Positions 837-48,578 of a stretch of DNA of 64,000 nt are shown in pieces. The stretch is from Bugula neritina. Lineage: Eukaryota; Animalia; Bryozoa. The translations under genes were made by a program, and so were the position numbers. Location of the stretch: assembly GCA_964035545.1 (NCBI GenBank), contig OZ037772.1, positions 7,114,889-7,178,888 on the forward strand. The letters are read 5' to 3'. The notes beneath the pieces were generated by a model. The model had not been told where the DNA came from and ran no database searches. It saw nothing but the letters and a program-made list of their open reading frames with translations. Position 1 is the first letter of the stretch; each line of letters opens with the position of its first letter.

Positions 837-3013
837 ATAAAAAGAATAACCAATGAGAGTCAAGAGCTGATTGACAGAGTTACAAACCACAAAGCTAAGG
901 TGACTAATCAGGTGGAAGATTTCTACAACAAGCTGATGCTGAAGAAAGATGGGTTGGAGAAGACACAAGCTGAGGTACATCGTCTGCTGAAAGATGGTCA
1001 TGTGACTGAGAAGATCAGACAGAAGAAGAGAGTAACAGAAGAGATGAACAGACATGATGCAGATAGACTAGATAACTGTGAACTTGTTGATCCGCCAACT
1101 GTAATTAATACAGGTTTGTGAAGTTTTTATTAGAAAATATCTTGGCTATAACAATCAGAAAACATCTGCCAGTTAGTTGGCTCTCTCAAAATGATGACTC
1201 ACCATATTTCATTATGGTACATTTTAAATAATAAAGTAGTATGTATCTCATATCACTACCTACATACAAGTATATGCTGTGAGCAGCAAGCACATTACAT
1301 ATGCTGAAAGATCATAATTATTTCTCAAAGAAGCTGCTAGAGACCTACAACTGTTAGTCATTACATTCCATGTGTAGCCTCTACTGCATGACAATAACTT
1401 TTACTTTAAATCATGTTGATAATTCACTTTGCAGTTTGTTTATTGAAGTTGAAAAATTACAGTATCAATAAATTATTATTTTTTCGTTGTATATGACGAG
1501 CAGCGTTTTAACTTAATATCTCCTGCCAAACCATTATATGCATTACTATATTATACGAAGGGCACACGCACACACACATTTAAACACATACATAAATACA
1601 TACTGCAGTACATACGCATATACCTGACATGCACATTATATGCATGTACACACATAGATTAGACATATGTATATAATCTTTAATAATTACAAGCATATAT
1701 AAGCAAAAATATACAACTTTTGTAGCAATTACATCAGATGATTATCTCATTTTCTTATTTATAGATTTATTCTAACCATCATAAAATCAGGAAACATTTT
1801 TGAAAAAATAAAATATACTTTCTAATAAAAATTGATTTCAAATAAACATATTAAGTGATTACCACTATATAGCATTTTACAGGTCAAATCACAAGTAAAC
1901 TGCTGAATGTTAGTCTAGTAACAGTTCCTTCTTCACTGACATTCATATCTGAACATGAGACAAATGGACAGTGTATGTCAGCTCATCACAGACAAGATGG
2001 TGACATACTCATAGGTACTCAGAATGGAGTACAGTTACTGAGTAGAGATGGTAACGAGCTGAGTGAATACAGTACAAGTGAGAAGAGAGTAACAGGAGTG
2101 ATTGAGACTCCTCAGAATGTCTTCATTCTACACAGAGAAGGTGACATATCTGAGATAGAGATGTGTTTAGCTGATGGCATCACAAATAGACAACAACTGT
2201 TTCAGTTTGATAGAACAAGTACTGATGCAGCAGTAATGACAGTCTCTGACAGATATGTTGTGGTGAATCTTCCAGATACTAGACAGCTGATCATCTATAA
2301 CTTCACCACTAAACAGACAGAGACTATTCATCCTGATGTGTATGCAGTTGGTCTACACTTTCTACCAGATGGTCATCTGCTAGGAGTTGGTGAATATAAA
2401 CTGATAAAGTATAAAGTAGGGAATGGAATGCTGACTACAGTCTGGACATGTGATGGTGTAACCGAAGGATACAGTGTCTGTGCAGATTCTAATGGTCTCA
2501 TCTATGTTTCTGGACAAAGCTTGAAGTCGCTTTACATCATTTCTCCATCAGGTACGGTTGCTTAAGCATGTGTATATTGTGAGTAAAAAACTCCAAATAT
2601 ATTTTTAGAGTTCATCAGAGGTGTTAGAAATGTCTAAAAATATTAGAAAAACAAATATTGAAAGTCTTTGAAATACTGTTTTTTGCTGCATCAAATTACT
2701 GTCTCCATAATATAGTCACATTGCTGGAATCTAATTTTGAGTATCCCCACATTTTTTCACCTAATTTACAAACCTTGTCTATAAATTATGAAGTAAATTG
2801 AGTGCATTTTGATAATTTTTTCTAAACCTTTTAGCTTACGTTATTCCCAATGCAGTGTATATTTTTAAATATTACACAGGTGTTCTTCTCAAGACACTGA
2901 CTCATGATAAGTTACCATCTCTATTTGCTGGAGTACCGAGTATCAGAGATGGAATACTGGCTGTACCTGGTTGGGGAGACGAGAAGTTATATCTTTTTAA
3001 AATAGAAACCTAA
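837..3013 (+). CDS. TRIM-like E3 ligase paralogue 1, 3' part only (coiled-coil exon 837-1113, beta-propeller exon 1883-2551, last exon 2880-3013)
   Basis: GT-AG junctions join in frame (phases 0/1/1) and end in TAA at 3011-3013. The 277-nt coiled-coil exon has the same size as in copies 2 and 3, and the protein is clearly paralogous. RING/B-box exons presumably lie upstream of the window. Confidence 0.88.
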
Positions 3014-4872: not shown

Positions 4873-8126
<3,254 letters not shown>

Positions 8127-8903: not shown

Positions 8904-10616
<1,713 letters not shown>

Positions 10617-12370
10617 CTCTATGTGTGAATATCAAAACTAGAAAACATAAAAAAGTATATTCCTATTACCAAATGTGTTAATATGTGATCTAATAAATAT
10701 TGTAATATATTAGTTGTTGATTAAATAATCAAGCAGACAAGTTATAAAATATGTCACCATTTACAATATAGTTTGCCAGCAATAAATTCTGAAAATCACA
10801 ATACAAGTTTTACTTGTAAACCGTAAAAACTTCGTTTAGGTGTGTGATAAATAATTTTGATTGTTATCTATAGATGTGCTATTTCTGCTTTAGGTACTAG
10901 ATATTATAATTCTGGGTATCCAAAATGCTAAACTTTCGGAGTTTTTACAAAAATACAATAACTCCATTACTATAATTTGTCATATCATGTCTAAATAGAT
11001 AAACTCACATTATGAGCAAGTGTCAACTTCCAATTTTAACTGCGTTGGTTGCTAAGATTCTTATTTGCAGCAAATACTCTAATTCCTAAAGACACAATAA
11101 TATATTTGCAATGCTCTGAAATATAATTATTTATGGCAGAAAGCATCTATAGTATATAATTTACTCATCTCTTTAGAATTGAAATAATTTCAACATATTA
11201 GAGCTTATGATTTCTAAAATTTTAATGTATAGGATATTTTTCTTTTAGTTTAATATAATTTACTGTTTACATAAACCAGTTTAATTAAAATAATGTGTGT
11301 TTCAGCTTGACTGCATTACGAATTATAGCATTAAAGCATTAAATATTTATATCTTTTACCAACAAGCTACCACTTTATATATTCCTAAGCTTCAACCTTG
11401 GATAAAATATTATATGACCTTAAAAATATCCTGCTTTAACTTTACATTTTATATAAAGAGCTACATTGCTTGAACTTCAAGTACAATCTAACTATACTTT
11501 CATTTCCTACTTGTCAACCTCACATTTATACCTTTATAATGATGACAAATTAATTCAAGTACTTGCACTCCCTATTCCGTAACTTCTCATTTGAAATAAA
11601 TACTTACAAAGGTTGTGCCTGCTATTCCACTAGAAGCTCCAAGGAAACTTAAATGTAGGCATCAGTTAATACGTCTTCTCAGGTATAAGCTAATAGCTGC
11701 AGCTGAATAGAGATGCTCATTTATGTTAATTAGTGTAATCAGCACAGGTAGACTGCTGAGTGCTACCTACTAATTAGTGCAACGTAATCATTATGTAAGA
11801 CAATTAGGCATTCTATTTATAATAGACTAAGTATGTCTATACTGCCCTTTTAGTTTAGGTAGAGATGCAACTTGCATCTTATATGTTGAAGAAAGTTGAT
11901 TTTTCTTTTTACTTGAGAGTTATGTTCACAATAATCTAAAAATTATTGCCTATTTTTTGATCTTTATGTATAATAAAGAGTATTTGAGAGGTCATGAGGG
12001 TTGAAGACATCAAAGTGTTGGTACTATACAACCATGAACATATTTATTAGTTGAAAGGATTCATAGATGACAACTCTTTATCTTATTTAAGATTGTTATT
12101 CAACACCCTTACAAGTTATACCAGAAATTTTTTTTAGTAAATATTCAAACATTTTGCCACATGTGCATCCTGCCAAAACAACCTGGTGTAATGCAAAGGT
12201 TTACCACTACATGTTATTTCTAGTTCTGGGGGTATAGAACCTGATGGTTTGCCATTTTGCCAGTCTTCAAATTTTTTTGAAGAAATACAGAAACATGATA
12301 AAACTCCCAATTGTTCCTTTTTAAAATTATAACATGCAATGTTGAGAGAAGCACTCACTAACCAAACAAG

Positions 12371-12495
<125 letters not shown>

Positions 12496-12661
12496 CAGTG
12501 TCCTCCTCAAAGGACATATATATATATAATATAGATTATCAACAGAAACCCTTTGTAAGCATTAAAAACCAACTGTCCCTCTCAAGGGACAGTTGGGGAG
12601 TTGTTTCCTTTCGGTTTTGTCTTTTTACCCTTCTTCATCAAAGAGCTACAACAACTTCAAA

Positions 12662-17901: not shown

Positions 17902-20900
17902 TTAATTTGTTCTAAACAAACGTAGCATCTTTTCACTCCAACAAGCTACAGCTAACATGTCATCTTTCACACTGATAGCTCCAACAATCTTTGGTAGTTT
18001 CTCATGAATCAGTTTTTTGAGTAAATTACCTGAAAATATACAACCAGATTTGTAAAGACCCTGCAAATAATTCATATTAAAAAAATTGGTGCATATTTAT
18101 ACACTTTTGATTTTATATAGGCGAAACTTCTACATTTAAAAAATTAATATACATTTATGCACAATTAGGATTTCAAAGTTCCTTAGATAGCTTCACCTGT
18201 AACTTCTCTATGCAAATTAAAAAACTTTTAGAATAGCTCTGCTGAGCAACAACTCATTGTAAAAAAATTCTCAACGCTTATTTAATAGTTAAATGTGTTA
18301 TGCGATAACTGTTACATGGATTTAAACATATAAACACAAATATACCTATATAATTTCGCACTGTTGCAGCTTCAGAAACAATAACTGCAAGCAGAACGCA
18401 AAGTTTCTACTATATCAAACCGCTTTTTTAAATTGCAACATGCATGAGTACAACTTTTTTATAAACACATTTTTTTATGCAAAAGAGATATTTCAAAAAC
18501 CAACCACTTTGATGTGATTTTAATAAATAAAAAAGTCTAAGTTCCTATTTGTTTTGTTTCAAAGTATCTCGACAAACTATAATATTAAAAGCGTGTATAA
18601 ACACCACTATAACTATAATAGTCAAAAAAGTTAGAATTAATTGCATAAAATAAAACATGCAACTTGCATCATCATAATATATACCTAATTTTATCCTTTT
18701 AAAGTGTAATACCAGTATTGTAGCGGAGGCTTACCTTTGGGTGATATGATGTAAACAGCTTTTACACTTTTGTTTGCACAAACAAAAATGAGACCATTAG
18801 GATCTGACCAGACACCATATCCTTCTGCTACACCATCACATGTCCAGACTGTAGTCAGCTTTCCATTCTCTACTTTGTGCTTTATCAATTCACCTCTGCC
18901 AACTGCTAGCAGATGACCATCTGGTAGAAAGTGTAGACCAAGTAGAGGCACATCAAGATGAATAATCTGTGTCTGTTTAGTGATAAAGTCATAGATGATC
19001 AGCTGTTCAGTATCTGGATAATTCACCACAACATATCTGTCAGAGACTGCCATTACTGGTCCAATGTTATTTGTTCTATCAAACTGAAGCAGTTGTTGTT
19101 TCTTTGTGATGTCACCAGCTAAACACATCTCTACCTTAGATATGTCACCTTCTCTGTGTAGAATGAAGACATTCTGAGGAGTCTCAACTACCCCTGTTAC
19201 TATCTTCTCACTTGTACTGTATTCACTCAGCTCATTACCATCTCTACTCAGTAACTGTATTCCATTATGGGTACCCACGAGTATGTCACCATCTTGTCTG
19301 TGATTGGCTGAGTAACACCCACCACTTGTCTCGTGCTCAGATATGAATCTCAGTGAAGAAGGAACTGTTACTAGACTGAAATTCAGTAATCTACTTCTAC
19401 ACTGACCTGCAAGATATTATGAAGAAGAAGTCATACAAAATGAGTATAAAAAGTTGTTTTTCATGCATACATACTTTATATAGGGTACATTATTTTGAAC
19501 TATGTTAAGCAAACTGTCTAATAAACTAGCACTTTCTACAAATAATATGCCAACCTACGTCTTTACAATTGTATAGTTATGTATATTTTCTTGATACCAA
19601 TTATCATAAAATTTTGCCTAGACTTCTAGACTTAGGGTGTGGTTGATTTGGTAAAAAAATATCAAAAACACATTTTATATAAACACATGGCTTCATTGAT
19701 CTATAGCGTCATTTCATATATTATGGGAGAGTGGGGCTAGTTGAACCATAGGATTAATTGAACCACATGCTCTAAATTTTCTCCTCTAAATCATTGCACC
19801 ATCTAACTCCTTTACTTATCAGCTTTTTAGATGAACTACCAGACATGTTAAAATATATGAAATCAAAGCAGAAGTTATTAGGAGAGCGAATATTTTTCAC
19901 AGTTTTTGCATAAAAAAGGAGCAATCCAAAAACATTTGTCATCAAAAGTTGCATAGCTTCGTAAATTTTAATAGCTGAGTAAAGTAAATTCAGACATGAA
20001 TGTGTTGTCAGGAAGATATCAAAACTTGACAATGACCTAAAGTTGCAGATATAGCTCATTCACAGCAGATATTGGCAATAACTTTTAATATACGGTGATG
20101 GCCAGGGAATATGTCGTGCGACCCTGTTCTCCTCTTTGTACTTTGAGCCTAGCCCATGCATTTTATATTCTGGACAATCTACTCATGCCACATGCGGCGG
20201 TCTGAGAAATGCCTCATGTTCTACCATTAGCCGCGGCAGCACCCTGGGATGCTGTACCGCCGCATGAAAGCCCTATGTGATGCCACAGCGCTGCACAGCG
20301 ACCCATGCTACATCTTGACAACCAGAACCCGTGGGGCCAATCAGCATGAAGCTCTCCTTTATAAGCAGGACATCCTGTACACCCAGTGACACTTAGCTAG
20401 TAAAATTACTAATGCAATAGTAGTAGAGAGTGGTTGGTTCTGGGGTCACTTTTTCTGGGACCCCCCCCCTATTTTCGTGAACGCCTTAATAAAAAGTTAT
20501 TATATGGTAGGAATATAAAAATTTATTGCGACACTTATTACTTATTTTTGTGAACAACAATTAGTAGAGACGCCTTAATAAAAAATTGTTATAGGCCTAT
20601 GGTAAAAATATAAGAATTTACTATTACCCAGACCAATTAATTAGGTATATAAAACTCATCTAACCCGTGCCTATACCTTTGAAAAAATAAGTTTTAATCT
20701 TGAATCGTTAGTGATTCCATTATATTACCATCGGACGTCGATATTACTAATTTACCTCCAACCGCTCCTTGCAATTTTGGAATAGTGTAACTGTATATAT
20801 TATTTATTGTAATAAGATCAACAATATTTATACCAGTTTCTACGATATTACCATCGCTCGAAAGCATTAATAATTTACCTCCGATTGACGGTTGTACTTT

Positions 20901-29900: not shown

Positions 29901-32900
29901 GTTACTCCCACTTGGCTACTCAGGAACTGTTTCGACGGGTTGCAGGACGAGTGGTCTGAGGAAGAGGTGGGGTAAGACCCAGAGTCTGTTTGTTTGTTTG
30001 TCGGACGCGGGCCCCGCTCAAACTCAAGGCTTGAGAAGTGTTATCTGCAGAGATAGGTAACACTAAAAGAGTTCAACCCTACAGTAGCAGATATTTTTTG
30101 CCTGGTAAAATAGCGGGCAAAACTGCTATCTTCTTGCTGGATTCAAAGTGTGCTACAAACCTCTTAAGCCATTGTCTCTGACACACTCAGCACACGAGAC
30201 CAGGCGGACCTGAAGCCATATAAGAGTGAACATGGTTGGTGGATGGGTCATGTTTACCCTTCAACAGCATCATTGACCTGGCTTTAAGAGTTCAAGATCG
30301 AGTGATCTATGAGAAAATTATCATCAGCCAGATTAAGAAGGACGCCATTTTAGTTAAGTATCTGGGGCATATTGTTGGCTGCGACGAGGTAGCTACCAAC
30401 CCCGAGAAGGTACAAACAGTTAAAGACTGGGCCACCCCCGCCGCCAGGATCTCACTGGCTACATGTTTTCTGGGACTGACAGGGTAGTATAGGCAGTACA
30501 TACCAGAGTTTTCGGGAATACCGTAGCCGTTAAATCACCTCACTGCAAAGGGGGTCTACTGGCAATGGACCCATGCTGAACCGCAAGCGTGGGATCACCT
30601 CAAAGGTTGCCTGGCAGAAGCACCTATCTTGGCATACCTGGATCCTACTAAGAAATACAACCTGGATATTGACGCCAGTGACCACAATATGGGGGCAGCA
30701 CTGTCGCAAATCCAGGATGGAAAGGGGTGGTCGTCGCTTACTACAGCAAAGCTCTTTCCGCTGCCAAAAAGAATTACTCTACCACCAGGAAATAACTCCT
30801 GGCAATAACCAAGGTTTTTAAGCAATTAGGCCATATCTGTATGAGATGATGTCCTGTCTCTGGATGGATCATGCCTTGATAATACGGTTGTGTAAAAGAG
30901 CTTAACCCTCCAGTCCAGTAGCACGATTGCTCGAAATCTTGGTCGAGTTCTCCTACCGGATTGAACACCGACCCGGGAAAAGGCACGGTAATGTGGATGG
31001 GCTACGCCGGTTTTTTAAAGGAGGGTGCAAACAATGCTTAAAAATTGAGCAGAGAAATGGGAGGCTCTCATGCTCTGACATTGCGGCACAGTTTGGATCG
31101 GCCGGAAGTTACAGCTGGGAGCAAGGTCAGCTTACGACCCGCTCTCATATGGGTACTGTAAACGCTCTGCCGCAGATTATGCACACATCACACAGTACGC
31201 CTGACTCCAGCACTTTTGAAACTCCCAACTTTTGGATGCTAGGTTGAGAGACCGGAGTTCCAGACCACCTGACTTTTCATGTTTCAGCCCAAGAAAACTC
31301 AGTTCACGGGTATGTGGGGGAGCTGATAGAGCACATAGAGCACAAGATGTTTAAGTTTGAACTCTGATTTTATATGTTTACTAATAAAAAGCCTGCAATT
31401 ACACATGAATGTTATTTGGTTGAAAATAGCTTACCTCTTTGTATCAGAGTTGGAGGATCAGCAAGTTCACAACCATTCAGCTTATCTGCATCATGTCTGC
31501 TCAGCTCTTCTGTTATTCTCCTTTTTTGGCTGATCTTCTCAGTCACATGGCCATTTATCAGGAGACGGTTCAACTCAGCTTGAGTTTTTTTTAATTCATC
31601 TTCTTTATTTAGCATCTTGTTGTGAGAGCTTTCCACCTGATTGGTCACTCTTTTGCTATGATCTGTAACTTTGTCTATCATCTCTTGACTCTCATCCGTT
31701 ATTCTTCGTATCTAAAATTTAATCAATGTCTTACTACAATTGCTTGTTAGCTAGCTTTCAGGAAACTGAGCGATGCATTTGATGTTGGAAACGAGCTTTG
31801 AATTATTGCAACTCATATACATAAAACATAAAGCTGTAGATAATATTTTGCAATAAGTGACTATACAACCATATATATAAAGAGTTCCATATATAATCAG
31901 ATTATTTGTCACAGTTTTTGAAAACTCGTACAGTCCAGATTTCAACATTGCATTATTACATCAATATTATTTTTTGGTCTTTAAAAGACTATTGATTTCA
32001 TTGTATAATTGTGACTAATTTGACGACTTTCACCAAACAATTTCGTGACTAAATCCTCACCATCTCATCCCTAACTCTTTCTATCTCTATTATAGTATCT
32101 CCACATTTCTCTCCCTGAACATCCAACTCTCTCCAAGCCTTCTTGTCCAGGGAATACACTTCATCTATCTTCTGTGAAGTTGTCTCTAGCTTCCCTCTGA
32201 GATATTCATTTACTTCCACTTTCAGGGATGTAAGAGACTTAAAGTCATGTTGACCTCCATCTGAAATGTACAGCCATATCTTACCACAGTGCTTTTTTAT
32301 TATAGTCAGTATATGAAAAACTATCATACTCTATTTTTGATCAAAGTACATGGTATAAGTATAATCTTGAAATATGATTGTAAGCAACCATTGTGGTCAA
32401 TGTTATAGCTGTACTAATTGAATCTTTATAAAGCTACTGTATATATTTTCTGTTTTGAAGTTGTGTTTGCTGTGATTAGTTGTGTTTTCCAAATAAGGAT
32501 GTATCGTTGAACTTTACATATAATATTTGTTATAGTGGCGCATTGAAAACAAAAGTTGCCTTTACACCTTCACGATTTTCAGTCAAAAATTCAATTTGGC
32601 CGGGTAGAAATTTCTCTGAGTTGCATTGCATTGTAGAAGTCACTCGTAAAAAGTTTTGTACTGTGATAACTTAATTGGCCAATTTCAGAACAATACTTAC
32701 AATGACCAATAACTCTTTGTAAACATTGTTATTTAGTTATGATTTTGGCGATTAGATGGTGTACTTGTATTTTATTAATTATATCACCTACGCCTTCTCA
32801 GTTGTCGCTTTTATGCTGTCAACTTCACTAATTCACGATGTTTACAAAGGGCATCAAATAGCGAGTAGGCAAATCAATTTTTAATTTTAGAAAGTGGGCT

Positions 32901-35900: not shown

Positions 35901-38782
35901 GGGAGATGCCAGCAACCGCACCTGTTAGCATCTTCTTTAGTCAGCACAGCTTCTTGAAGTTTTGGCACGTAGTGGGGTTAACAATGTCTGAGTGGGTTTC
36001 GAACCAAAGATTGCTGTGCTCTCAGCTATAGACGCCTCCTCCCGCAACTGCTCCTTAACGTCAAAGCGAACGGGTCTCTCTCTATGTGCAGGAACTGCTT
36101 ACCGTCCTCCTTCGACCGGCAACTAATACCGTCGGCATTCTTGTGCTTCTCTCCACCACAATGCTCTATCCCGTAGGAGAACTCAGCAAGGATCTTCAAC
36201 CAACAAGCCACCTTACTCAAAAGTTCAGAATGCTTACACAGCCACATCAGTGATGCATGGCCTGTTTGTAATCTAAACGTTCTCCAATACAAATGTGGCC
36301 AAAAGTGCTTGACTGTCTTGACTACCGCTTGGAGCTTATTCTTAGCGGTGCAGTAGTTCTTCTCTGTGGTCGAGAGAGTTTTGTTGTAGTAAGTCACTAC
36401 CAGCTCTGTTTCACACTGGACTTGGGACAGGGCAGCCCTGCGGATATACTCCTGGGCCGAGTCTGAGTATGCCAAGATGAGTGCTTCCACTAGCCGGTCC
36501 TTGAGATGATCGAATGCCCGTCGCTTCTCCGGTGTTCACTGCCACCAGACCCCCTTGGCAGTTAGTCGATTGGAAAGCTGCGCCACTCCCGGTATATACT
36601 ATAAAAATTAGAGCATGCCAAATTTCAGAGCTCAGAAATTTAGCGCGCTCCAATTTTCAAAATATTCTACCGATCTTCACCGAAAATTTAACACTGGAAC
36701 TTTAGGCGCACCTATGAGAGGCCCCAATTTTGGTACCTTCTGACTTTTGGTCAAAAATTGGTTTCCAGCACACAAAAAAGTAGACAGGTAAAAGCAAACA
36801 ATAATTTACACCAGTGGCTTACCTATATTAATAGTAGTTAAATTATTCAGAAAATTACGCCAAAAGTTTAACAATGCAATTGCACTCAATTAATGTGTTC
36901 TAGCACTTTCCAGAATATAATGTAATGATAACTCCCAAAATCTACCACAGTATTATAATATTATTACAATGATGTTTGGCTAGCTTAGATAATACACACA
37001 GTATTAGAATTTTATTGTACTCAAAACACTCTAAATAGTAAAGTAACGTCTCAACTAGAAAGAGTAAACAAAACAACTGACTTTAAAATGTGCTTTTTCG
37101 ACAATAAAGAAAAACACTAGAGCAATTTTTCATTTCATTGAAATATATGTTCAAATTTTGCCATCTACAAAAAAAAGAAGAAAGAAATTTTTTAAATCTC
37201 TTAATTTCTGAAGGCCAAAACTAATGCTACTCGGTCGGTGTGAAGTGTTATAAGTCTCTCAATCTCAGTTTATGTGTGCAAAATAAGATAAGGCTACATG
37301 ATTGGAGCCCTTAGACATAACTTTCCTCTTCTGTTGTAATAGCTATTTCTAGAACATTAGCAGGATTTGCTCATACACCACAGTTTTTAATTACAAACGT
37401 TACAGACATTTCTTGTAGCTCAACTACTTGTATCAGCTTTTTAAAAGCCACCATTGTTTTATTAACATTCATTATGAAGTAGTTAGAGTAACTGAAGAAC
37501 TTTACATGCGCTATAGTCAGCTCAACAAATACAGCTAGTGATACTGTAAGAAGGACCAAATAGCACTTCAACTTCTGTGGTTTATTAGCAACTGCTCAAT
37601 AACCAATAACCTGGAATAATTAACTTTCCTAAACAGTTGGTAAGTTACTACAATATTACCTGTGCAATCGTATCCATCAATCTCACACTCAAAGCAAATC
37701 AGTTTATCACATTTCTTGCAAGCTCTCACCAGAACCTCTTTATGATGTTCACATGTAGGTTGATGGAAGTTTGTTGGTGAGCTCTTGTAGATATCAATAC
37801 CCACTACTTTGTGGGCCTCACCAAGAAATGTCTTATGGACCTATAGCAATATTATAAAAAGAAACTAAAAAAAAACATATCTACATTAGCAAAATTATAA
37901 AATAATCAAATTCATTAACACATGTACATATCCATACATCAAAACCTGTACTATAGCATGTTATTGAATTCACTCATATATTATTTTGTCTGTAACGCAA
38001 GTGGAATCATAAATAATATTTCAATAATTTCAATGAATCAATTTGGAGATACAGTAGTTGAACTATACCTGCTGATGTTGAATACAAAACATAACTTCAC
38101 ACTTCACACAGTAGCATGTAGCTATTTGACCTTGACATCCATGAGCTGTACAATACAGCGTACCAGAATCATCAGTTTCTCGGACAGCCTTCAGTAAACC
38201 TTCAAACTCTAGTGAGACATAAACCTCCCTGTAACATATTATCGAGTTAAGTATACAGCTTTCAAACATTTGTATGTGCAGGACACTTAAAAAATATCTT
38301 ACAATTAGCTACAGCCCATCCTATAATCACTTGTTGGCTCTACATAATTGTTTAAAATCGGAATTTCTGACAAGGTTATTTTAAATTACTCAATATATAA
38401 TTAAGCAACTCACGCAAAGACAATTTGGTGTAGCAATTTCAAAAAAGATTAATATAGAGTTTGACGCTTTGTACTAAACTTTCAGCAGATACTTTTTCAG
38501 TTCTCCCAAATACTGCCTCTATATCTCCCCCTACAGGTGCCTAAAAGGTTATAGTATAATTTGTAATATGGGCTATATAGGAAAAAACATGTATGCTGTA
38601 CATAACACTCACCCACAAGTTTTAATAGGGCAGGTCACAGTTCTATGTTTACTGTAATGTCCTTGAATACAAGTCAAACAGAATACATGCTGACAAGGCA
38701 GCTCTCTTGGATCTCTCATGTCATCCCTCTTAGAGGCACAATAACCACACTCATACCATTCTGGTAGTTGCTGGGCAGCCAT
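17902..38782 (-). CDS. TRIM-like E3 ligase paralogue 2 (~595 aa: RING-Bbox1-Bbox2-coiled coil-NHL-like beta-propeller); exons 38782-38613, 38228-38069, 37840-37660, 32260-32061, 31711-31435, 19406-18735, 18029-17902
   Basis: C3HC4 RING (CGYC...LPCQHVFCLTC...CPIKTC), B-box1 (CTAHGC...CVKCEVMFCIQH...H), B-box2 (CEHH...CKKCDKLICFEC...H). All six introns are GT-AG with compatible phases; 1788 nt open frame. Confidence 0.88.
20694..21583 (-). pseudogene. Polinton fibre-like repeat protein (six ~40-aa repeats)
   Basis: LDMGVNKISRVVDPADTQDAA-KKYVD motif followed by ~120-bp tandem repeats encoding KLTIST..G.V.DS.LKVD.V.TK. Frameshift in the T-run at ~21400 and an in-frame stop at ~21237. Confidence 0.62.
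21600..22571 (-). pseudogene. Cluster of small decayed Polinton ORFs (starts 22571, 22523, 22089), two of them mutually related
   Basis: All start at TAAATG. Motifs GNEHNVPYIKI and GDAHNIPYVEV are related. Internal stops and frameshifts are present. Confidence 0.5.
22575..22968 (-). pseudogene. Adenain-like cysteine (capsid maturation) protease of Polinton
   Basis: Read across frameshifts: FRGLFSKDELP...ILNLDD...GTHWVAW...YFDSFG..PP...Q...TVICGHLCL. Its ATG overlaps the pPolB TGA (ATGA). Confidence 0.88.
22965..26616 (-). pseudogene. Protein-primed family B DNA polymerase (pPolB), multiply frameshifted
   Basis: VIYADFE (ExoI), RVRDHCHLTG.YRGAAH..CN (endonuclease-VII-like insert), GYDSHLFIK, YLDANNLYGWAM, KLMNN.FGK, FTDTDSL and DDKR motifs appear in the correct order. 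The N-terminus has a Rho_N-like helix-extension-helix (MTVKNLKVLAKQRGLKLYSQLTKAEL). Confidence 0.95.
26689..26961 (-). CDS. Small Polinton ORF with a Rho_N-like motif (ELENVIKYYGIKGYSRRKK)
   Basis: ATG at 26961 lies within the tracked ORF 26689-27120; the motif resembles the pPolB N-terminus. Confidence 0.45.
   Translation of the reverse strand: MEWNTVIVELIVRAEQKQYVKLTKQNVAALIEPPSSFDNNMKLGIKRKISCCMNGNELENVIKYYGIKGYSRRKKFKVQEILACTFNINE
27009..27443 (+). pseudogene. Polinton hydrophobic-hairpin protein (gasderminX-like in adintovirus nomenclature)
   Basis: Coiled coil...KKY, then a Gly-rich hydrophobic segment, then after a frameshift KINAMLSKFLNADYIDDSEY. This matches my recollection of the conserved Polinton ORF. 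Confidence 0.55.
27605..27924 (-). pseudogene. C-terminal remnant of a Gly-rich Polinton core/pVI-like protein
   Basis: An amphipathic VLPSLAKIIPSVLSG segment and repeated G.GLYLK motifs. It is joined to the truncated penton gene, implying an internal deletion near 27925. Confidence 0.45.
27925..28374 (-). pseudogene. Polinton minor capsid protein (penton), C-terminally truncated
   Basis: LLKQIV.NTAPK...NPPIKLD...LETYYSFPNID...W....LP.G.YELEDI pattern; the start codon reads ATA at 28374. Confidence 0.82.
28389..28795 (-). pseudogene. Polinton major capsid protein (double jelly-roll), C-terminal fragment
   Basis: NPALFDHVNV...LNSE*YP...LFVIDVSKQSE.LK....DI.....F..NVPANTQAYALIL.D. It is cut at ~28795 by Gypsy sequence. 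Confidence 0.85.
28800..31320 (+). mobile_element. Ty3/Gypsy LTR retrotransposon remnant 1 (gag, protease, partial RT, RNase H)
   Basis: PFFSGEEDVEQFI gag, FLLDS protease, KYLGHIV...NPEKV RT end, LDIDASD and IEHRPGKRHGNVDGL RNase H. Many stops and large deletions. Confidence 0.88.
32399..33563. repeat. Diverged ~125-bp direct repeat pair (32399-32520 / 33443-33563)
   Basis: Both copies read AATGTTATAGC...TAATTGAATCTTTAT.AA.CTACTGTATATATTTTC...TGTGTTTGCTG...TTAGTTGTGTTTT..AAATAAGGA...TTGAACTTTAC; probably old LTR/TE fragments. Confidence 0.7.
33758..36949 (-). mobile_element. Ty3/Gypsy remnant 2 (RNase H, integrase Zn-binding region) between diverged LTR-like repeats 33758-34070 and 36592-36949, in intron 3 of TRIM copy 2
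   Basis: EKNYCT...KHFWPHL...IEH..G.KH.NADG.S and H...H.G......LQ..WYWPGM..DV......C..CQ motifs. The flanking repeats align with each other and partly with the LTR start near 50603/60706. Confidence 0.8.
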
Positions 38783-39453
38783 CTTTATTATTCTCTAAAC
38801 TATGTTAACAAAGAACTGACATTACTTTAAATAGTTTTTAGCTTGCACATGTTTTACCTGTTACTATAACAACAGAAAATCTTAAAAACTCACCTTTTTA
38901 GATTTTGGATCAAATTACACTAAGTATAGGAACATACTGATGCACTTGACTGCATGTGCATTGAGTGAATAAGAAACTGTAAAAGGTGGTTTCTTTTGAA
39001 AATAATGTAATAAAAAGAAACTGCTTTTTACATATTATGTATTGATTGCACAACTCGTGGAGTGTTAACTATGTAAACACATAATTAGCACTCTAATTTC
39101 TAATACTATAGAAGTTGGATCATTAGTATTAGGTCCTCACACATTGAGCTTGTATATAACTGAATTATGTGGGGATTCCTGATTTAAAAGTGGATATATA
39201 TAGAGTTTGGTAGAATTAACCAATAACAGTATGTTACAGCCAAATTATCTTTTTTTATTAGTAAGTGTTGTAAAAAATATTATTCAATTATTCAACCCCC
39301 CCTCCATATGACTATATATAACAGTTCTTATAGATGACATAGCATATTCATGTTATATAAATTTGTATTGAGTTAAGTTATACAAGCAAACTTTGTCACT
39401 AACATTACATTACCATTATTTTTTGTTATTACAAAAAATCTTATAGCTTTGCT

Positions 39454-39871
<418 letters not shown>

Positions 39872-42740
39872 TTTTGCAACTTCAAAGAAATGTTTGTGCT
39901 ACTAGTGAACAGAATAAATAAAAAGTGTTATATAAACCATGCAACAAATTAAAGTACACTAATTACTCCCAGCACTGCTAGTGAAAGATAATTTTCTGTA
40001 TTTAGTCTTTAAACAATAGCCCAGCTTTAAATATACAAATACAAAAAAATTAAAAGAGAAACAATAAGTACAGTAATACCCTTCTAGTAGTTTTTGAGCA
40101 GCCATTAATAATGGATGTATAAATCAAGGAGTTTGAGTAACTTCATGCAGTATAAACATTTTTTTTACAAAATTATGTGAAGCAAATATATCGCCTACCA
40201 GAAGGCAGGTCCTCTACATATAAAAAATTTAAAATGTGTACTTGTACAATACTGCATGCTTTAAACTAACCCTGTTATCCCTTAGAAGAAAAACTATGCT
40301 CAACAAATTTTCAGTAGACTGTAATAATTATGAGCATATGCTACTCTGTATTTTACAATATAGAAGTGGAGCTTTTTGCAGTATGATAAGTTGTAGAAAA
40401 CAACTACTGTTAAGTAAACTGCGTTAAGAGTTGTCATACATATTGAAAAGACTTTCATTAAGACTTAACTATCAGCACCTTGTTCTATTCTATTAAAATA
40501 CTCACCTTTATTTCTCTTACAGTAGCTGTTCTAACTCGTAATCAAGTTTGAACACAAATCAATGCAGCTACTGAAACGTATAGTATGCAGTTTCAGTTTA
40601 TCAATTACATTGTAGCCTCAGCTTCAAATATTATACTAGACTATATGATGATCTATTAGAGTAATATAAGAGGGTTATATCAATCTCTGGTAATCAGGCC
40701 AAATAGGGATGCCCCTTTACCATAATGATTATTGTTCTTGTTCAAATACTGTATTGAGAACTATGTCGTTTTAGCAAGCAAATTATGTGTTTGCCTATAG
40801 ATGCAAGATAAATGTAAGTCAACAGCCAAAAACACTGTAGCCTCTTTTGTTGCTTTTATTCTCAATTATGTGAAAGGAACAGGCGAAGTACTCCTTTGCA
40901 TAAATCTGAAGATGTCAACCCAATTGATAATACTTTCAGCTCAACTTTGCTCATCACTTAAATACCCCGTCAATAAGACTGTACACAAAGAGTGCCAGTT
41001 TTTTAGTTAGTTATTTGAGTACTCAGTTTACTAGCATAACATGCGACTTTTCCTGTGCAATAAGGTTTGAACAGAATAGTCTGCACAATTTCCATTAAGC
41101 TGTGTTGTAGCTGTGTTAGAGCATTTGTAACTTAAAAGCACTTCATAATGTTATGCTTTAGCAGTACAATTAGCAGATTGGCCAATTTCACATCTGCATG
41201 ATTACCTAGCTTAGCTGGTTTTTCAAAAACTCAGGCTGACAAAGAAGCAGTATTTTAAACTGCGTTATTGAATGAAGTTTTACTATATCTTAAGCTTTCA
41301 TTCACATGCAATTGCCATTATAACTAATTAATTCATTTGTTTGAGACGTAAAAATTCCCAAAGCATGGCAATATGCACATTTAAAAAACTATTCTCAAGG
41401 TCACCAGCACTTGCTAGCCCATTTGCAAGTGGTAACATCTTAGTAATAAATAACATAATCAGCATTTGGGAGCAAATCTTATATATACATTGCATTGGCA
41501 AACTAACTGGTATGACATTGCATAACTGTCAGTCATGACTCATGCAAGTATAATTGGTCAGCTATTGATGCATCCACAATATTATAATGCAGTTAGGTAT
41601 TGCATGTGCAGTGTTGAAATAAGAGGACACGTTGCAAAGTTTATGTACAACAAGCTCTGAGTTTTTTGTAAATTTTGCATGTTTTCTTTTTTTTTCAGAT
41701 TAAAGAAGGTTCATTTATATGTGCTTTATAGAGTCGACAAAAAATTTGTTGAATGTTTTATACAAAAAATTCCAGGCTATCAATGATAGTTCTGCACAAT
41801 TTTTCTAAATTCAGAAACTAGTATTATCTCCTCTCCAGTGCCAGGCACAACTCTAGAAGCCCTCTATAGAGCAACTTAAGTACAAAAGCTGTTGATTACC
41901 TACAAATATGTAGTCAAAATTAAACCAATTGGTGCACTAATAATAGCATTACTTAAAAGACATTATTTTTAATTATACTACTATTATAGAAAAACTATAA
42001 TAGAAATAAGAACAAAAAATCTAACATAATAATGATACTTTTACTATCTTCATCGAAACCAGCTTCTAACTATGTTATCATCTTAACGGTCTTCTTGTTA
42101 CATGTGAGTAATAAATTAATTAGTTAATAGATGAGCTCTACTTTAGCAAACATATGTTTTGTGAATTCATGAGATAATTAAAGCTCAGTATAGGTTTGCA
42201 ATAAACATAAACACAAATATTTCACTTCTATTCCATTTTATGTCAAATGAATGTTTATTTGAATAAGTTAAATCAAGACATTACTAAAGTACTATTTATA
42301 TAAGTCATTTGTGGATTAAAATATATTTTCGACAAACAGATAATTTTGTAACAAACCATTGTCACCCCTGGGCAACCAAGTTAAAGTCTGAGCTTTGTGT
42401 TACCTAAAATATGTTAGAATTCAAATCAAATTATCTTCATTCTTTTAGTATAGATGTTTATCAATAGATATAAATTATATATATTGTATGTATTAAACAG
42501 ACAATTAGCATCTGTACAGACGCTGCATGTAGGTATTAATTAAACTTCCACATGAAAAAATGCAATCATATATTTTGACCAAGTGCTTAGGGTAAACTTG
42601 GTTGCCATTATATAGTATCATAATATTCTTGGCAAATGGCACTAAATCCACAAGAAATGGCTATATATAAATATAATCAAATTCTGAGTATAGTTAAAAG
42701 TTTATATGTATAATTTACTTCACAGCTGTGCAGTTTACAT

Positions 42741-45700
42741 TCAGTTCTCCTTATACTGCACTTTAAACAGGCGCAGCTTCCGATCACTCCAACAAGGAAC
42801 AGCTAATATGCCATCTTGAAAACTGATCATTCCACTTATGTTTGGCAATTTGTCATGAACCAGTTTTTTGAACAAAGTACCTGTAAAATACAAAAAACAA
42901 TTTCTTCAGATTGTGTGGGCCAGTATTCTAAGCAGCTCCATATTTTTTACTCCAATTTTTCATTATACAAGCTTTTCCATGTTTTGGATTGCTGCAGGGA
43001 TTTTGTTTGATACTGTGGTATTTATATGTTGAGGAATGGAATCGAAGGTAAAGGTGGATTTTTTATTTTGCTTATATCAAAAAACTGTTATATAAAAGTG
43101 TTTCATGAACATACGTAGCAGCTCTGTAACATTTGCTATGAGTTATCTGAATGACTTCAAATTAGTATGAGAGAGTAAATTACCCTCAGGTGAGATGATG
43201 TAAACAGCTTTGACACCATCTGTTGTACCAACATAGATGAGACCATCAGGATCAGAGCAGACACTGTATCCATATGTTACATCTTCACATGTCCAGACTG
43301 TAGTCAGCTTTCCATTCTCTACTTTGTATCTTATCAGTTTACCTTTACCAACTCCTAGCAGATGACCATCCGGTAGAAAGTGTAGACCACGTGGATACAC
43401 ATGAGGATGAATAGTCTCTGTTTGTTTAGTGATGAAGTCATAGATGATCAGCTGATTAGTATCTGGATGAGTCACCACAACATATCTGTCAGAGACTGCC
43501 ATTACTGCTGCACCTTTACTTGTTCTATCAAACTGAAACAGTTGTTGTCTCTTTGTGATGTCACCAGCTAAACACATCTCGACTTTATCTATGTCACCTT
43601 CACTGTGTAGAATGAAGACATTCTGAGGAGTCTCAATCACTTCCGTTATTATCTTCTCACTTGTACTGTATTCACTCAGCTCATTACCATCTCTACTCAG
43701 TAACTGTATTCCATTATTAGTACCTATGAGTATGTCACCTTCTTGTCTGTGATTGGCTGAGTAACATGAATCATCTGTCTCATGTTCAGATATGAATGTC
43801 AGTGAAGAAGGAACTGTTATCATACTGATGTCCAGAAGTCTACTTGTGTCCTCACCTTCAATATATGATGTAAAACTGGTCATGTATGTGTATGTATGCA
43901 TCTGACAAGTCATTCTTATGCAAAATAATGTTGCAAGCTTATTTTAAATTTATTAAGTAGACTAGCAACTTTTACAAATAATAGTTTAACCAAGTTTTTA
44001 CAGCGAGCTTTTCAAATTATTATTCAACTTGAAAGCCGCCTACAGTTTTGGTATTTTCGACATTTATAAAAAATTTAAAATGTCACTGTGTCATTGTTAT
44101 ATTATATTGCGGTTTTATATTATCATTGTCATATAGTAGTAACTCAATTAAATTTTTAATAATCTGTATCCGCCTTTGGTTACATCGAAAAAGAAGATTT
44201 GGTTCATAAAAAGAAAATATTGCAGATGTTATGACTGCTAGTTTTCAGCAAAAGATTCTAACTCAGACGTTGACCAAAAATGAAACAATTGTATTCCATA
44301 TCACATGTGCTTATGCAGCAACAACACTTTACTATTATTGTACTCTATGTTTCAAAATATATTGTATACTCAAGTATTATTGAACACTAGTGTAATGAGC
44401 ACATTTTCATTGAGTGATATTGGTTTACTATCTAAAATTTTAGCAGATTACTCACACGGCACTTGAGTTGTTATTCTAACACATCTTTAAGATCGCCAAA
44501 CATGTTTTTTGCTTAAGTGAGCAGTTAAATAATTTGATAAGCTTTACTTGTATACACATGCAATTACAGCTAATAAATATCAAGTGCTTTGTTGAATATT
44601 CTTTGCATGTATAAGTTTTGCATTACGTTTTCTGAGCTGCAAACATTCTGAGCAATGACTATTTAACTTAATTGAGATCATTATTCAAAAATCTGCAGGT
44701 TATGTCATACACACTATATAGTGTATTCTAATGTTTTGAACTATTTCTGTTTAAATTAATCTTCAGACAACAACTTTGTAAATTTATTATATTATCTCAC
44801 GTATTGTAAGGTCTCCTTATAATAAACCACAAGTAACATATTATATTATATTGTAATTGTAAAGGTGTAATAGCCATTTCTTTGTATGCCTGTGCTTTCT
44901 CAGGATTTGTGGTTGGCAAAGATTATAGTTTTTGTTGCAGCCATTTTTATACTGAGATACCCTTAATCAAAAATATCACAAATAAAGTAATTGTAAATAG
45001 AGTGTCAGCTGCAGGAAACCAAAAGTCAGTAGAAATTTTTTTTTACTCGTTAATTTTGGTTGCATAAATTCCTGTAATTTAGATTCTTATATATTCCATA
45101 CACTAATATTTTAAACCATCTGAATTTATCATTTTTATCTGCATTTTTTTGCTGTTTACTTTTTCAAACATAGTTTATGCAGGTTTGTCGGCCTACTATA
45201 GATCTGAATGATTTAAATTACTTTAAACATATCTACAACAAAGAGCAGTGAAACAACTCTATATACAGCACACTGACACCTTCGGTCAGTGCAAATGAAA
45301 TTTTGTATAAAAAACAAGCAAAACATCATATTATTGTCTAATTTTGAAATAGTTGCAAGTCAATAAATAATTAAATCTTGCAGCTGCATCTGTCTTAACA
45401 GACGTTGATAACAGAAACTGAAACTATGCTGAGGTTAGCTAATCTTTCCCAGTCTACACAGAGTTTCTGAATTAACAAATATCAATTTTTATAACCATTT
45501 TCTCTAGTTTATTTAGTGAACTATTGTGCAAGTATCTGCCAGAATATGGAGGGGGAGAAATAAAATTTAATTCAATAACCATATAATTTATAATTTCATG
45601 ACTACATTAAAGCATTTTCAAACTAAGCGGATTTGCGCAGCATACCTCATATTAGTATTGGGAAAAAAGAACCTATATAATATATCCCAGAATGACACAA

Positions 45701-48578
45701 GAATAGTTTCATGTAATGACAGCTTACCTGTGTGTATCAGAGTTGGTGGATTAGCAAGTTCACAATCATCCAGTTTATCTGCCTCATGTTTGTCCAGCTC
45801 TTCTGCTATTCTCTTTTTCTGTCTAATCTTCTCAGTCACATGACCATCTTTTAGCAGACGAGTTAACTCAGCTTGAGTTTTTTTCAGCCCTTCTTCTCTT
45901 GTCATCAGCTTGGTGAAAAAACCTTCAACCTTAGCTGTCATTTTTTTCTTGTGGTTTCCAACTTTGTCTATCATCTCTTGACTCTCCTGCCTTATTCTTT
46001 GTATCTGCATAGAATTTATAATCAATTTTTTCACCATTTCTTGTCAGCTAATTTTTAAAACACTGAGCAAAGAACTTGATGTTGACAATAACCATGATAA
46101 TATTGTCTCTCAAATATATAAAGCATGAAGCTTCATATAGAAATTTGTAAATAGTGAATACAACCATATCTAATATGTCATGCAATCTGGTTAAATTTCT
46201 GGCATGTTTTTTTGAAAACTTGTTAAGTAAATTTCAACATTGCCTAATTTCATGAACGTTTTTTGCTTTGAGAAGGCTAATAATCTTATCATAATATGAT
46301 TTGCCATTAGGTAATTTTTTGTTATAAAGAGAACATTGATTTTATATTGAAATACTTCCAGAAAATAATTTCATAATTATATAGAATGACTGTACCCACC
46401 ATCTCATCTCTAACTCTTTCTATCTCTGCTGCCATGGCTCTACATTTCTCTTCCTGAAAATCCAACTCTCTCCACGCTTTCTTTTTCAGAGAATACACTT
46501 CATCTATCTTCTGTGAAACTTTCTCCTGTTTACCTCTGAGATATTCATTTACTTCCACTTTCAGAGATGTGAGAGACTTGAAGTCATGTTGACCTCCATC
46601 TACATTGTACATCAAAATCTTACCACAACATTCTTTATTCCTGACTGTATATGAAAAGCTATCATATACGCTATTTTTTGATAAAAGTACACGTTATAAG
46701 TGCACTTTTGAGATATGATGTTCAGCATAGCTTGGATAATATAAAGTATTAGGGTTGTATTGTACTCAAAACACTCTAAATAGTAAAGTAAGGTATGCCT
46801 TAACTGGAAAGAGTAAACAAAACAACTGACTTCCAAATTTATACATTTTTTTCAAGAACAAAGAAAAAACATTATAGAACAATCTTTTTGCCTTTTTGAA
46901 ATACTTATTTTTAATCTTAGCCATTTACAAAATAAAGAAGAAAAAATATGTTTCAAATTCCTTATTTTTAGAAGGCCAAAACTAGTGCTACTCAGAAAGT
47001 GTGAAGTGTTATAATGAATATCTCCATTGTGTTATCCACAAAATGCCAACTAAGCCTATATGGCACCACTAAACATACCAAGAACGCCTTCATGATGACA
47101 ATGACCAGAAGCCTTAGCTACTTTTAAAACTCTGGCAGAATTTTCTTGTGCATCATAGGAGATTTAATATGCTTTTAGTAAATGCTTGACTATTTCTAAG
47201 TACAGATATTACAGACATATTTTCTTATAATTCAACCACCTTTACCAGCTTTTTAAAAGTCATCATTATTAATTTATTAACATTCAATGTGAAGTAGTTA
47301 AGGTAACTGAAGAACTTCACATGTGTTATAGTCAGCTCAATGAATACAGCTGGTGATACTGTAAGAAGGAGCAATTAGCGCTCCAACTTCTAGGTATCTT
47401 AACAACTGATTATTAACAGGTAATCTACAATAATTAACTTTTCTCTAATAGTTGGTATAACTTATAAGTTACTACAATGTTACCTGTACAATCTTCTTCA
47501 TCAATCTCACACTCAAAGCAGATCATTTTATCACATTTCCTGCAAGCTCTCACCAGAACCTCTTTATGATGTTCACATGTTGGTTTGTTGAAGTTTGTTG
47601 GTGAGCTCTTGTAGATATCAATGTCCACTACTTTGTGAGAGTCTCCAAGAAATGTCTTATGGACCTGTAGTAGTTTTAATGAAAATCAATATAAAATAGC
47701 ATATTTACATTGGCAAAATTATCAAAGAATCACATTCATTCACGCAGATATATTATATACTTCAACATTTGTACTATATAACATATTATGGATTTCATTT
47801 ATTGATTTTGTCTATAAAGCAAATGGAACCATAACTATTAATATTGTAAATGAATCAACTTGGATCTACAGTAGTTGATGCATACCTGCTGATGCTGAGT
47901 ACAAAAAATAACTTCACACTTCACACAGTAGCATGTAGCTATTTGGCCTTGACATCCATTAGCTGTGCAGTACAGAGTACCAGAATCACCGGTTTCTATG
48001 GTAACCTTTGGTAGACATTCAATCTCTAGTGAGTCGTAAACTTTCCTGTAACATATTATTGAGCTAACTGTAAATATATCGAACAATTTTGTGAGCAGGA
48101 AACCTACATAACATTTTAGAAATAACAGCTCATACATTGGAAATTCACTTGTTGGCTTGAATTGTTTAAAATGGGAATTTCTGACAAGGTTATTTCAAAT
48201 TACTTATATAATTATACAACTCAATCAGGGACATCTGGGTGTAGTAATTGAAAACATTTCAATAGAGAATAACTATTTTAATACGCGCCTATCAGATACT
48301 TCTATATCATTTTCTTAACTACTGCATCTCTTGTCAGGAAATTCTAAAATTAGACTGCAATGTCTCATAACATCAGCTACGTAGAATATTCTATAGATTT
48401 TACTTTATACTCACCTACAAATAGGGCAGGTCACAGATCTATTTTTACTGTAATGTCCTTGAATACAACCCAAACAGAACACATGCTGACAAGGCAGCTC
48501 TCTTGGATCTCTCATATCATCTCTCTTAGAGACGCAATAACCACACTCATACCATTCTGGTAGTTGTTGGGCAGCCAT
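42741..48578 (-). CDS. TRIM-like E3 ligase paralogue 3 (~597 aa); exons 48578-48415, 48045-47886, 47664-47484, 46599-46400, 46004-45728, 43855-43184, 42880-42741
   Basis: Internal exon sizes (160/181/200/277/672) and phases are the same as in copy 2. Canonical RING ending in CPIC; 1794-nt open frame. Confidence 0.9.

Follow-up and report, generated by a model that had tools for sequence, protein, structure and literature searches.

The locus considered here raises the question as to whether a cluster of TRIM-like genes in the bryozoan Bugula neritina, whose C-terminal beta-propellers differ at short patches, encodes a diversified set of recognition receptors. The window, by which we mean the whole 64,000-nt stretch of DNA that was analysed, carries three paralogous TRIM genes; g2 and g3 are complete with seven exons each, and g1 is truncated by the window start (Table 1). 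In the seven-exon genes the order is RING, B-box1, B-box2, two coiled-coil exons, a propeller exon, and a short terminal exon, and the same layout is found at other B. neritina loci. All exon junctions of the gene models are GT-AG and the open reading frames are intact; neither g2 (595 aa) nor g3 (597 aa) has a stop codon or frameshift across its seven exons, and the splice sites are all canonical. An earlier, sequence-only reading had placed the three propeller exons at exactly the AG/GT borders found here and had overlooked the terminal exon of each gene (128-140 nt), which encodes the last four propeller strands. For g3, an alternative propeller donor at an internal in-frame GT (43228) costs 15 residues and was rejected; the donor homologous to those of g1 and g2 was used instead. 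The g2 coiled-coil and propeller exons are split by a 12-kb transposon-filled intron, and the array is heavily invaded by transposons, including a Polinton within a g2 intron.

Table 1. Exons of the three TRIM genes in the window.
Gene	Exon	Coordinates	Strand	Remarks
g1	Second coiled-coil	837..1113	+	tblastn to g3 exon, AG/GT bounds; exons further upstream precede window start
g1	Propeller	1883..2551	+	Blade 6 strand D, blades 1-4, blade 5 strands A-C; AG/GT bounds
g1	Terminal	2880..3013	+	Blade 5 strand D, blade 6 strands A-C, stop codon; tblastn with full-length Watersipora relatives, frame check
g2	RING	38613..38782	-	6-nt in-frame insertion; last zinc-ligand pair C-P-I-K-T-C, not C-P-I-C
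g2	B-box1	38069..38228	-	
g2	B-box2	37660..37840	-	Pfam zf-B_box E=2.4e-4
g2	First coiled-coil	32061..32260	-	
g2	Second coiled-coil	31435..31711	-	
g2	Propeller	18735..19406	-	AG/GT bounds
g2	Terminal	17902..18029	-	tblastn with full-length Watersipora relatives, frame check
g3	RING	48415..48578	-	Start codon at 48578; Pfam RING families above gathering score
g3	B-box1	47886..48045	-	
g3	B-box2	47484..47664	-	Pfam zf-B_box 23.7 bits
g3	First coiled-coil	46400..46599	-	
g3	Second coiled-coil	45728..46004	-	Pfam TRIM_CC E=0.0025
g3	Propeller	43184..43855	-	AG/GT bounds
g3	Terminal	42741..42880	-	tblastn with full-length Watersipora relatives, frame check

The TRIM architecture proposed earlier is borne out, with the RING exon above Pfam thresholds, B-box2 slightly below, and the coiled coil matching weakly. 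The g3 RING exon scores 34.5 bits with zf-RING_2 (cut-off 27.3), 32 with zf-C3HC4 (21), and 34 with zf-RING_UBOX (25.2), and the g2 RING is 92% identical to it, with C-x4-C as its last ligand pair; the RING match ends at the same point in two B. neritina copies, which is consistent with a variant of the g2 type. B-box2 scores 23.7 bits in g3 and 21.6 bits in g2 with zf-B_box (cut-off 24.1). B-box1 has no Pfam match and shows a Cys/His pattern in the translation, and both B-box exons align with the B-box region of a Watersipora TRIM-like protein. The coiled coil has a heptad-like composition and matches TRIM_CC with 18.1 bits (cut-off 30). All of these domains are under purifying selection, with site models giving omega 0.28 and a likelihood-ratio statistic (LRT) of 0 for the RING and B-boxes, and 0.38 and 0.44, respectively, for the coiled coil. 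The protein begins with the RING, and neither a signal peptide nor a membrane segment is present.

The C-terminal domain is a predicted, very divergent NHL-like six-bladed beta-propeller. An AlphaFold (AF2) model, made not for a window copy but for a relative from B. neritina with 86% identity to g1, has six blades and 24 strands (pLDDT 94.2, pTM 0.90). Its top structural matches by VIA-align are the NHL domains of Mei-P26 (Z 26.2), Brat (26.1), TRIM2 (25.9), and Lin41 (25.4); the NHL matches have Z of 24-26 and rmsd of 2.6-2.9 over ∼240 residues at just 10-13% identity, and other six-bladed propellers follow close behind (Z 20-24). A Foldseek search of the PDB was uninformative and was set aside, as it gave only generic seven-bladed WD40 proteins (TM ∼0.6-0.67). 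Pfam NHL (PF01436) has no match at E<=1 in the window exons, B. neritina P0173, or the Watersipora proteins, and the only Pfam matches on the propeller are weak and generic (COPA/B, WDR35); SPRY/PRY (B30.2) has no match in the family proteins. A Bugula-only profile has no match in the PDB; a bryozoan-wide profile reaches Pizza (7e-9), the Thin NHL domain (0.006), and the TRIM3 NHL domain (0.008), and TRIM3 is reached at 1e-20 only with a broad profile that takes in distant matches. The TRIM-NHL label of the sequence-only reading thus stands by fold and by weak profile similarity, but not by PF01436, which was never matched.

The family is large and fluid, as opposed to a few stable copies. In B. 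neritina and associated contigs we found 81 distinct relatives (90% clustering), none more than 86% identical to any window copy, the paralogue DNA having been gathered protein by protein, and there is structural variation between the window and a syntenic B. neritina contig. Sequencing runs matching the locus gave DNA contigs only, many of them 90-99% identical and piled on exons; this pile-up indicates only a multi-copy family. A related-locus search of metagenome contigs gave a single distant locus (31% identity). The nearest named relative is Watersipora subatra XP_067933727 ('E3 ubiquitin/ISG15 ligase TRIM25-like'), and there are uncharacterised Watersipora paralogues too; because XP_067933727 matches over RING, B-box, coiled coil, propeller, and terminal exon, the family is common to cheilostome bryozoans, although propeller identity with the Bugula family is merely 29-36%. 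The 'TRIM25-like' name is an automatic label; TRIM25 carries a SPRY domain and no propeller.

How are the differences among propellers distributed? All of the conserved blocks and variable patches quoted in the sequence-only reading are present in the three window copies, and variation is concentrated in the D-A and B-C loops, which form the top face: 24 of the 44 top-loop columns vary among these copies, versus 43 of 162 in the remaining fold (p=9e-4), and all three copies differ from one another at 10/44 versus 4/162 columns (p=4e-5). The patches recur twice per blade in the D-A and B-C loops, as had been correctly proposed. The description of the framework between them as invariant was overstated, because variation extends to 76 of 225 columns (34%), including 37 strand columns, and a runs test shows only mild clustering along the sequence (z=-2.2); framework omega is ∼0.5.

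Codon site models were fitted to 14 propeller sequences (the three window copies and 11 from Bugula neritina contigs), a set that may mix paralogues, orthologues, and alleles. Our own maximum-likelihood code, in which branch lengths are fixed up to one scale factor and posteriors are naive empirical Bayes (NEB), reproduces the IQ-TREE lnL of -4197.90 for M0 (omega 0.78). The models identify sites with omega above 1: M2a (lnL -4080.35) is preferred over M1a (-4122.34; 2dlnL=84, p=6e-19) with 10.4% of sites at omega 3.7, and M8 over M7 with 2dlnL=116. Gene conversion can inflate such LRTs, and the recombination control consists of three fixed segments only; with a separate tree for each segment the signal persists in all three (LRTs of 18.6, 23.3, and 13.1), and it is absent from the N-terminal exons. 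Of 22 selected sites within the fold, 18 lie in top loops, one in a bottom loop, and three in strands (Fisher p=3.5e-5), with faces assigned from strand order and loop lengths in the AF2 model of the g1 relative, and the selected residues thus lie on one face. With structural classes defined a priori, omega is 1.44 for top loops (bootstrap interval of the mean 0.87-2.25, which spans 1), 0.53 for bottom loops, and 0.52 for strands, at equal dS (∼0.2). Two ortholog-like pairs provide a tree-free comparison: top-loop dN is 0.199 between g3 and L010, versus a flank divergence of 0.065-0.077, and 0.187 between g1 and L004, versus an intron divergence of 0.09-0.14, from which the propeller-terminal intron was left out as unalignable (50% identity). 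The top loops evolve under positive diversifying selection, and therefore almost every copy has its own loop set; strands and bottom loops are under purifying selection. In canonical TRIM-NHL proteins, ligands bind the top face.

Selection is accompanied by recombination. Within the propeller exon the PHI test is significant (p<0.001), segment trees disagree, and loop variants are distributed among copies in a non-tree-like pattern. Across the family, dS is 0.19 for the RING and 0.21 (sd 0.06) for the propeller, versus 1.29 for the first coiled-coil exon, which falls into two deep clades; coiled-coil and propeller dS are uncorrelated. Similarity among the window paralogues is limited to exons (BLASTN), and global alignment of their introns is no better than a shuffled control. 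The low and uniform RING and propeller dS, deep coiled-coil clades, unalignable introns, and recombination together point to exon-scale gene conversion, which holds the scaffold uniform and reshuffles loop variants; the near-uniform framework is due to gene conversion, rather than to absolute constraint.

What, then, is the array for? The family has many copies, a conserved effector module, and a contiguous, putatively ligand-binding surface under positive selection, as a diversified recognition-receptor family does. Taking the evidence as a whole, we consider it reasonably probable that the window carries a section of a tandem TRIM gene array from a bryozoan-specific family, that the top-face loops are positively selected for diversity, and that the family is a germline-encoded intracellular recognition repertoire, probably immune. 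The variable top face would bind a diverse range of ligands that change fast, with proteins or RNA of viruses or other parasites as the most likely candidates, and the constant RING, a predicted E3, would then ubiquitinate the target or signal, as in TRIM5alpha and fish finTRIMs.

The alternative that survives best, though we think it unlikely, is that the family diversified for a non-immune task, such as RNA binding on the top face to regulate endogenous or transposon transcripts, colony allorecognition, symbiont control, or reproductive conflict; as any of these could explain it, one-face diversification could arise without pathogen sensing. In structure the propeller comes closest to TRIM-NHL domains that bind RNA, transposons are dense in the array (including the Polinton in g2), and Bugula is colonial and symbiont-bearing (PMC7576161). 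However, a RING-first protein lacking a signal peptide and membrane segment would be a poor direct cell-surface allorecognition molecule, and canonical TRIM-NHL genes are conserved and of low copy number (PMC2533329). We regard as distinctly improbable a second explanation, that the elevated omega is an artefact in an ordinary birth-and-death array, with conversion or recombination and relaxed surface loops mimicking positive selection. Recombination is indeed significant and segment trees disagree, the bootstrap interval includes 1, and a framework omega of ∼0.5 is itself rather relaxed; but the LRT is significant in all three segments with their own trees, top-loop dN exceeds flanking noncoding divergence in both ortholog-like pairs, no signal comes from the N-terminal exons of these genes, and the reading frames are intact. 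Bottom loops are equally exposed, yet differ sharply in omega from top loops at equal dS, and we reject pure relaxed constraint on loops. That the window copies are decaying pseudogenes, varying without present function, is very improbable and was rejected: the long transposon-filled intron and unusual RING pair of g2, and runs whose DNA contigs hold no spliced joints at exon borders, could be read this way, but g2 and g3 are free of stops and frameshifts with canonical splice sites, purifying selection acts on strands and N-terminal domains (omega 0.28-0.52), and in two other B. neritina copies the RING match ends at the same point, as would be expected if they carry the C-x4-C variant too.

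[quoted passage not shown] The Bugula family differs in that this domain is a six-bladed NHL-like propeller and not B30.2, B-box1 is present, and gene conversion makes the scaffold uniform one exon at a time; moreover, 'group 2' TRIMs are described as absent from invertebrates, whereas the present host is a bryozoan (PMC2533329). With the canonical TRIM-NHL proteins (Brat, Mei-P26, LIN-41/TRIM71, TRIM2/3/32) the family shares the order of RING, B-box, coiled coil, and six-bladed propeller, but it lacks a filamin domain, and in place of a conserved 'group 1' with low copy number and low Ka/Ks (PMC2533329) it comprises dozens of copies whose loops are positively selected. We read the Bugula array as a repertoire of the finTRIM/TRIM5 kind that uses an NHL-like propeller. 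A further likeness, in mechanism only, is to the MHC and to plant NLR/LRR clusters. There, gene conversion among clustered paralogues goes together with selection that diversifies the ligand-contacting positions in a repeat scaffold, in unrelated protein families and cellular contexts. A more tentative extension, which we offer as possible rather than probable, is that gene conversion confined to exons shuffles loops in the germline, keeping one scaffold and one RING uniform across ∼100 genes and combining about twelve top-face loop variants into near-unique sets; this would be an anticipatory intracellular receptor repertoire on an NHL-type propeller in a colonial invertebrate.

Our literature search found no paper linking bryozoans with TRIM diversification and no direct precedent among invertebrates for an expanded or positively selected TRIM-NHL family. 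Fast-diversifying TRIM repertoires have hitherto been tied to B30.2/SPRY domains and to vertebrates, and TRIM-NHL proteins have been seen as conserved developmental RNA regulators. If our interpretation is true, the variable-recognition strategy arose independently on another fold in Lophotrochozoa, and it did so on an NHL-type propeller, for which a role as a recognition scaffold in immune diversification has not been described before. With its short single-exon variable domains and defined loop positions, the family would give a tractable model for the interplay of conversion and selection, and would open up the almost wholly uncharacterised innate immunity of bryozoans.

In the TRIM genes of this window the effector module is constant, the scaffold is homogenised and a single face is under positive selection. 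Their most likely function, as the analysis suggests, is a germline-encoded intracellular recognition repertoire tied to ubiquitination; the main rival is that the diversity serves to regulate RNA or transposons, to mediate allorecognition or to control symbionts.

Six-frame translation and tblastn with exon peptides identify three paralogous genes (see the table): g3, with seven GT-AG-bounded coding exons (597 aa); g2 (595 aa), with the same exon set and a 12-kb intron packed with transposon sequence between its coiled-coil and propeller exons; and g1, which is truncated at the window start and has three exons inside. Each of the three propeller exons named in the sequence-only reading is a precise splice-bounded exon, and all of its quoted conserved blocks and variable patches were located, although it overlooked the terminal exon, detected via full-length Watersipora relatives. 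The RING scores above the Pfam gathering score, and B-box2 and TRIM_CC slightly under theirs. The sequencing runs searched for this locus gave DNA contigs alone, none of them joined across introns. We note that the g3 propeller exon has an internal GT in frame with the terminal exon; its hypothetical use as a donor would drop the exon's last 15 residues, including the B-C loop of blade 5.

Genes and other features in the window
Feature	Positions	Strand	Remarks
g3 RING exon	48578-48415	-	
g3 B-box1 exon	48045-47886	-	
g3 B-box2 exon	47664-47484	-	
g3 coiled-coil exons	46599-46400 and 46004-45728	-	
g3 propeller exon	43855-43184	-	
g3 internal GT	43228-43229	-	
g3 terminal exon	42880-42741	-	
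g2, seven exons	38782-17902	-	
g2 RING variant carrying an insertion	38613-38640	-	6 nt
g1 second coiled-coil exon	837-1113	+	
g1 propeller exon	1883-2551	+	
g1 terminal exon	2880-3013	+	
Polinton/Maverick-like element	20700-28700	-	run of ORFs in 12-kb intron of g2
Type-B DNA polymerase fragment of this element	24207-24536		protein-primed; PF03175, E=7e-4
piggyBac-type transposase	15687-17448	+	DDE_Tnp_1_7, E=1e-31 and 4e-8; frame break gives two ORFs; just downstream of g2
PDZ-domain exons, unrelated gene	9758-10631	-	PF00595, E=2e-10; between g1 and g2; (TA)n microsatellites on either side
LTR-retrotransposon remnants	29000-31300, 34500-36600, 49400-64000		two in g2 introns
RT RNase H (LTR remnant)	36029-36535		PF17917, E=1e-15
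DUF1758 peptidase ORF (LTR remnant)	57762-59777		
(CA)n microsatellite	39450-39880		~430 nt; g2-g3 intergenic
(TA)n tracts	6160-6600, 10330-10480, 12360-12500		

The family is large and specific to bryozoans. A HMMER search against 1.84 billion representatives yielded no more than 194 relatives, of which 81 fall below 1e-10, the named ones being Watersipora subatra proteins, including 'TRIM25-like' XP_067933727. Most of the 81 relatives in the 90%-clustered database are single-exon ORFs of Bugula neritina (GCA_010799875.2) or of metagenomes associated with Bugula; identity of the 81 to g3 ranges over 45-83%, and none exceeds 86% identity to any window copy. Eleven B. neritina loci have the identical seven-exon layout, arranged as tandem arrays. 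The literature searched held no precedent for bryozoan TRIM diversification, and papers beyond it are possible.

The propeller was modelled on residues 14-281 of P0173, a B. neritina relative 86% identical to g1, with the terminal exon included and a 116-sequence alignment. The model (pLDDT 94.2, pTM 0.90) has 24 strands, and thus six blades of four strands, with blade 6 closed by the N-terminal strand. Among 48,161 PDB representatives compared with VIA-align, TRIM-NHL domains rank top, sharing 10-13% of residues (Mei-P26, Z 26.2; Brat, 26.1; TRIM2, 25.9; Lin41, 25.4), and other six-bladed propellers follow closely (Z 20-24). The TRIM-NHL label of the sequence-only reading therefore holds for the fold but less so for sequence: Pfam NHL did not match the propeller in any search, and a bryozoan-only profile resembles NHL-type structures weakly (Pizza, 7e-9; Thin, 0.006; TRIM3, 0.008).

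Codon site models were fitted to 14 aligned propeller exons (225 codons), three of them window copies and 11 taken from B. neritina contigs, on an IQ-TREE tree (GY+F3X4), using a custom likelihood that matches the IQ-TREE M0 lnL of -4197.90 and is simplified to a single global branch-scale factor and NEB posteriors. M2a was favored over M1a (2dlnL=84, p=6e-19), with omega 3.7 at 10.4% of sites, and M8 over M7 (2dlnL=116), so sites with omega above 1 are present, as a diversified receptor family had been proposed to show. The same genes gave no positive-selection signal in RING and B-box exons (omega 0.28, M1a/M2a LRT 0) or coiled-coil exons (omega 0.38, LRT 0.44). Out of sample, in the 11 other copies, columns variable among window copies have omega 0.86-0.92 and window-invariant columns ~0.47.

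In a propeller with four-stranded blades, consecutive loops alternate between two faces, and a 2-residue turn cannot bridge strands D and A of adjacent blades. Because loop classes 4k, 4k+2 and 4k+3 all include such turns, the D-A loops must be those of class 4k+1 (4-12 residues), and odd-numbered loops are D-A plus B-C, the conventional top face; faces were thus assigned on the P0173 model from topology (strand order and loop lengths), not coordinates. On this assignment, all seven variable patches are predicted to lie in top loops (L1, L5, L9, L11, L13, L15, L19), where the sequence-only reading had placed them, and the 24 selected sites (M8 posterior >0.8) map predominantly to one face: 18 in top loops, one in a bottom loop, three in strands and two in the N-terminal tail (top versus bottom loops, Fisher p=3.5e-5). 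With structural classes fixed a priori, omega is 1.44 in top loops (bootstrap 0.87-2.25), 0.53 in bottom loops and 0.52 in strands; because dS is ~0.2 in all three, a mutational hot spot does not explain the higher top-loop value.

Recombination is evident in the propeller exon (PHI 0.462 observed versus 0.517±0.011 expected, p<0.001), and trees of its three segments are mutually discordant. Loop variants are almost unique to each copy (12-13 distinct among 14 copies at six loops), and the few that are shared have a non-tree-like distribution. M1a/M2a was therefore rerun with the alignment divided into three 75-codon segments and a separate tree for every segment, and even with this coarse control LRTs were 18.6, 23.3 and 13.1 (p<0.002 in all three), such that a recombination artefact is unlikely to lie behind the omega signal. 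A tree-free comparison used the two ortholog-like pairs with alignable flanks. Between g3 and locus L010, intron and intergenic divergence is 0.065-0.077 versus a propeller dN of 0.104 and top-loop dN of 0.199; between g1 and locus L004, intron divergence is 0.09-0.14 versus a top-loop dN of 0.187. Protein change in top loops thus exceeds neutral divergence in both pairs.

Nucleotide similarity among window paralogues ends at exon borders, even though their propeller exons have a dS of just ~0.2. Averaged over nine genes, dS is 0.19 in the RING exon and 0.21 (sd 0.06) in the propeller exon, 0.38 and 0.61 for B-box1 and B-box2, and 1.29 and 0.36 for the first and second coiled-coil exons, the first forming two deep clades; dS of the coiled coil shows no correlation with that of the propeller (r=-0.06). 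Together with recombination in the propeller exon, these patterns indicate gene conversion among the copies.

The window copies could be decaying pseudogenes, but this is unlikely, given the uninterrupted reading frames of g2 and g3, their canonical splice sites and purifying selection on propeller strands and N-terminal domains. Pairwise NG86 comparisons between window copies give omega ~0.3 for RING, B-box and first coiled-coil exons (dS 0.17-0.39), 0.27-0.51 for the second coiled-coil exon (dS 0.4-0.8) and ~0.7 for the propeller exon (dS ~0.2). The g2 RING has C-P-I-K-T-C in place of C-P-I-C. RING HSPs ending at residue 53 in two B. neritina copies (L002, L006) fit this variant, and the insertion sequence recurs at 48420 in loose contig ends of two sequencing runs, X1 and X3. 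It therefore seems to be a widespread variant, and a defect limited to g2 is improbable.

The B. neritina contig VXIV02003415.1 (locus L002) shows synteny to the g3-g2 region, with 82-93% identity, and has g2-like coiled-coil exons immediately behind a complete g3-like gene; window 37609-42476 (4.9 kb, with the g2 RING and B-box exons) corresponds to 234 bp there (11415-11649). On another B. neritina contig, extra partial propeller- and terminal-exon copies downstream of a complete gene (L005, 11849-14823) look like cassette remnants.

If these proteins do serve as such a ubiquitination-linked recognition repertoire, they would work in a mode similar to that of the TRIM5alpha and finTRIM families (PMC2657112), with an NHL-like propeller instead, a type of TRIM gene otherwise found among the conserved 'group 1' genes (PMC2533329).
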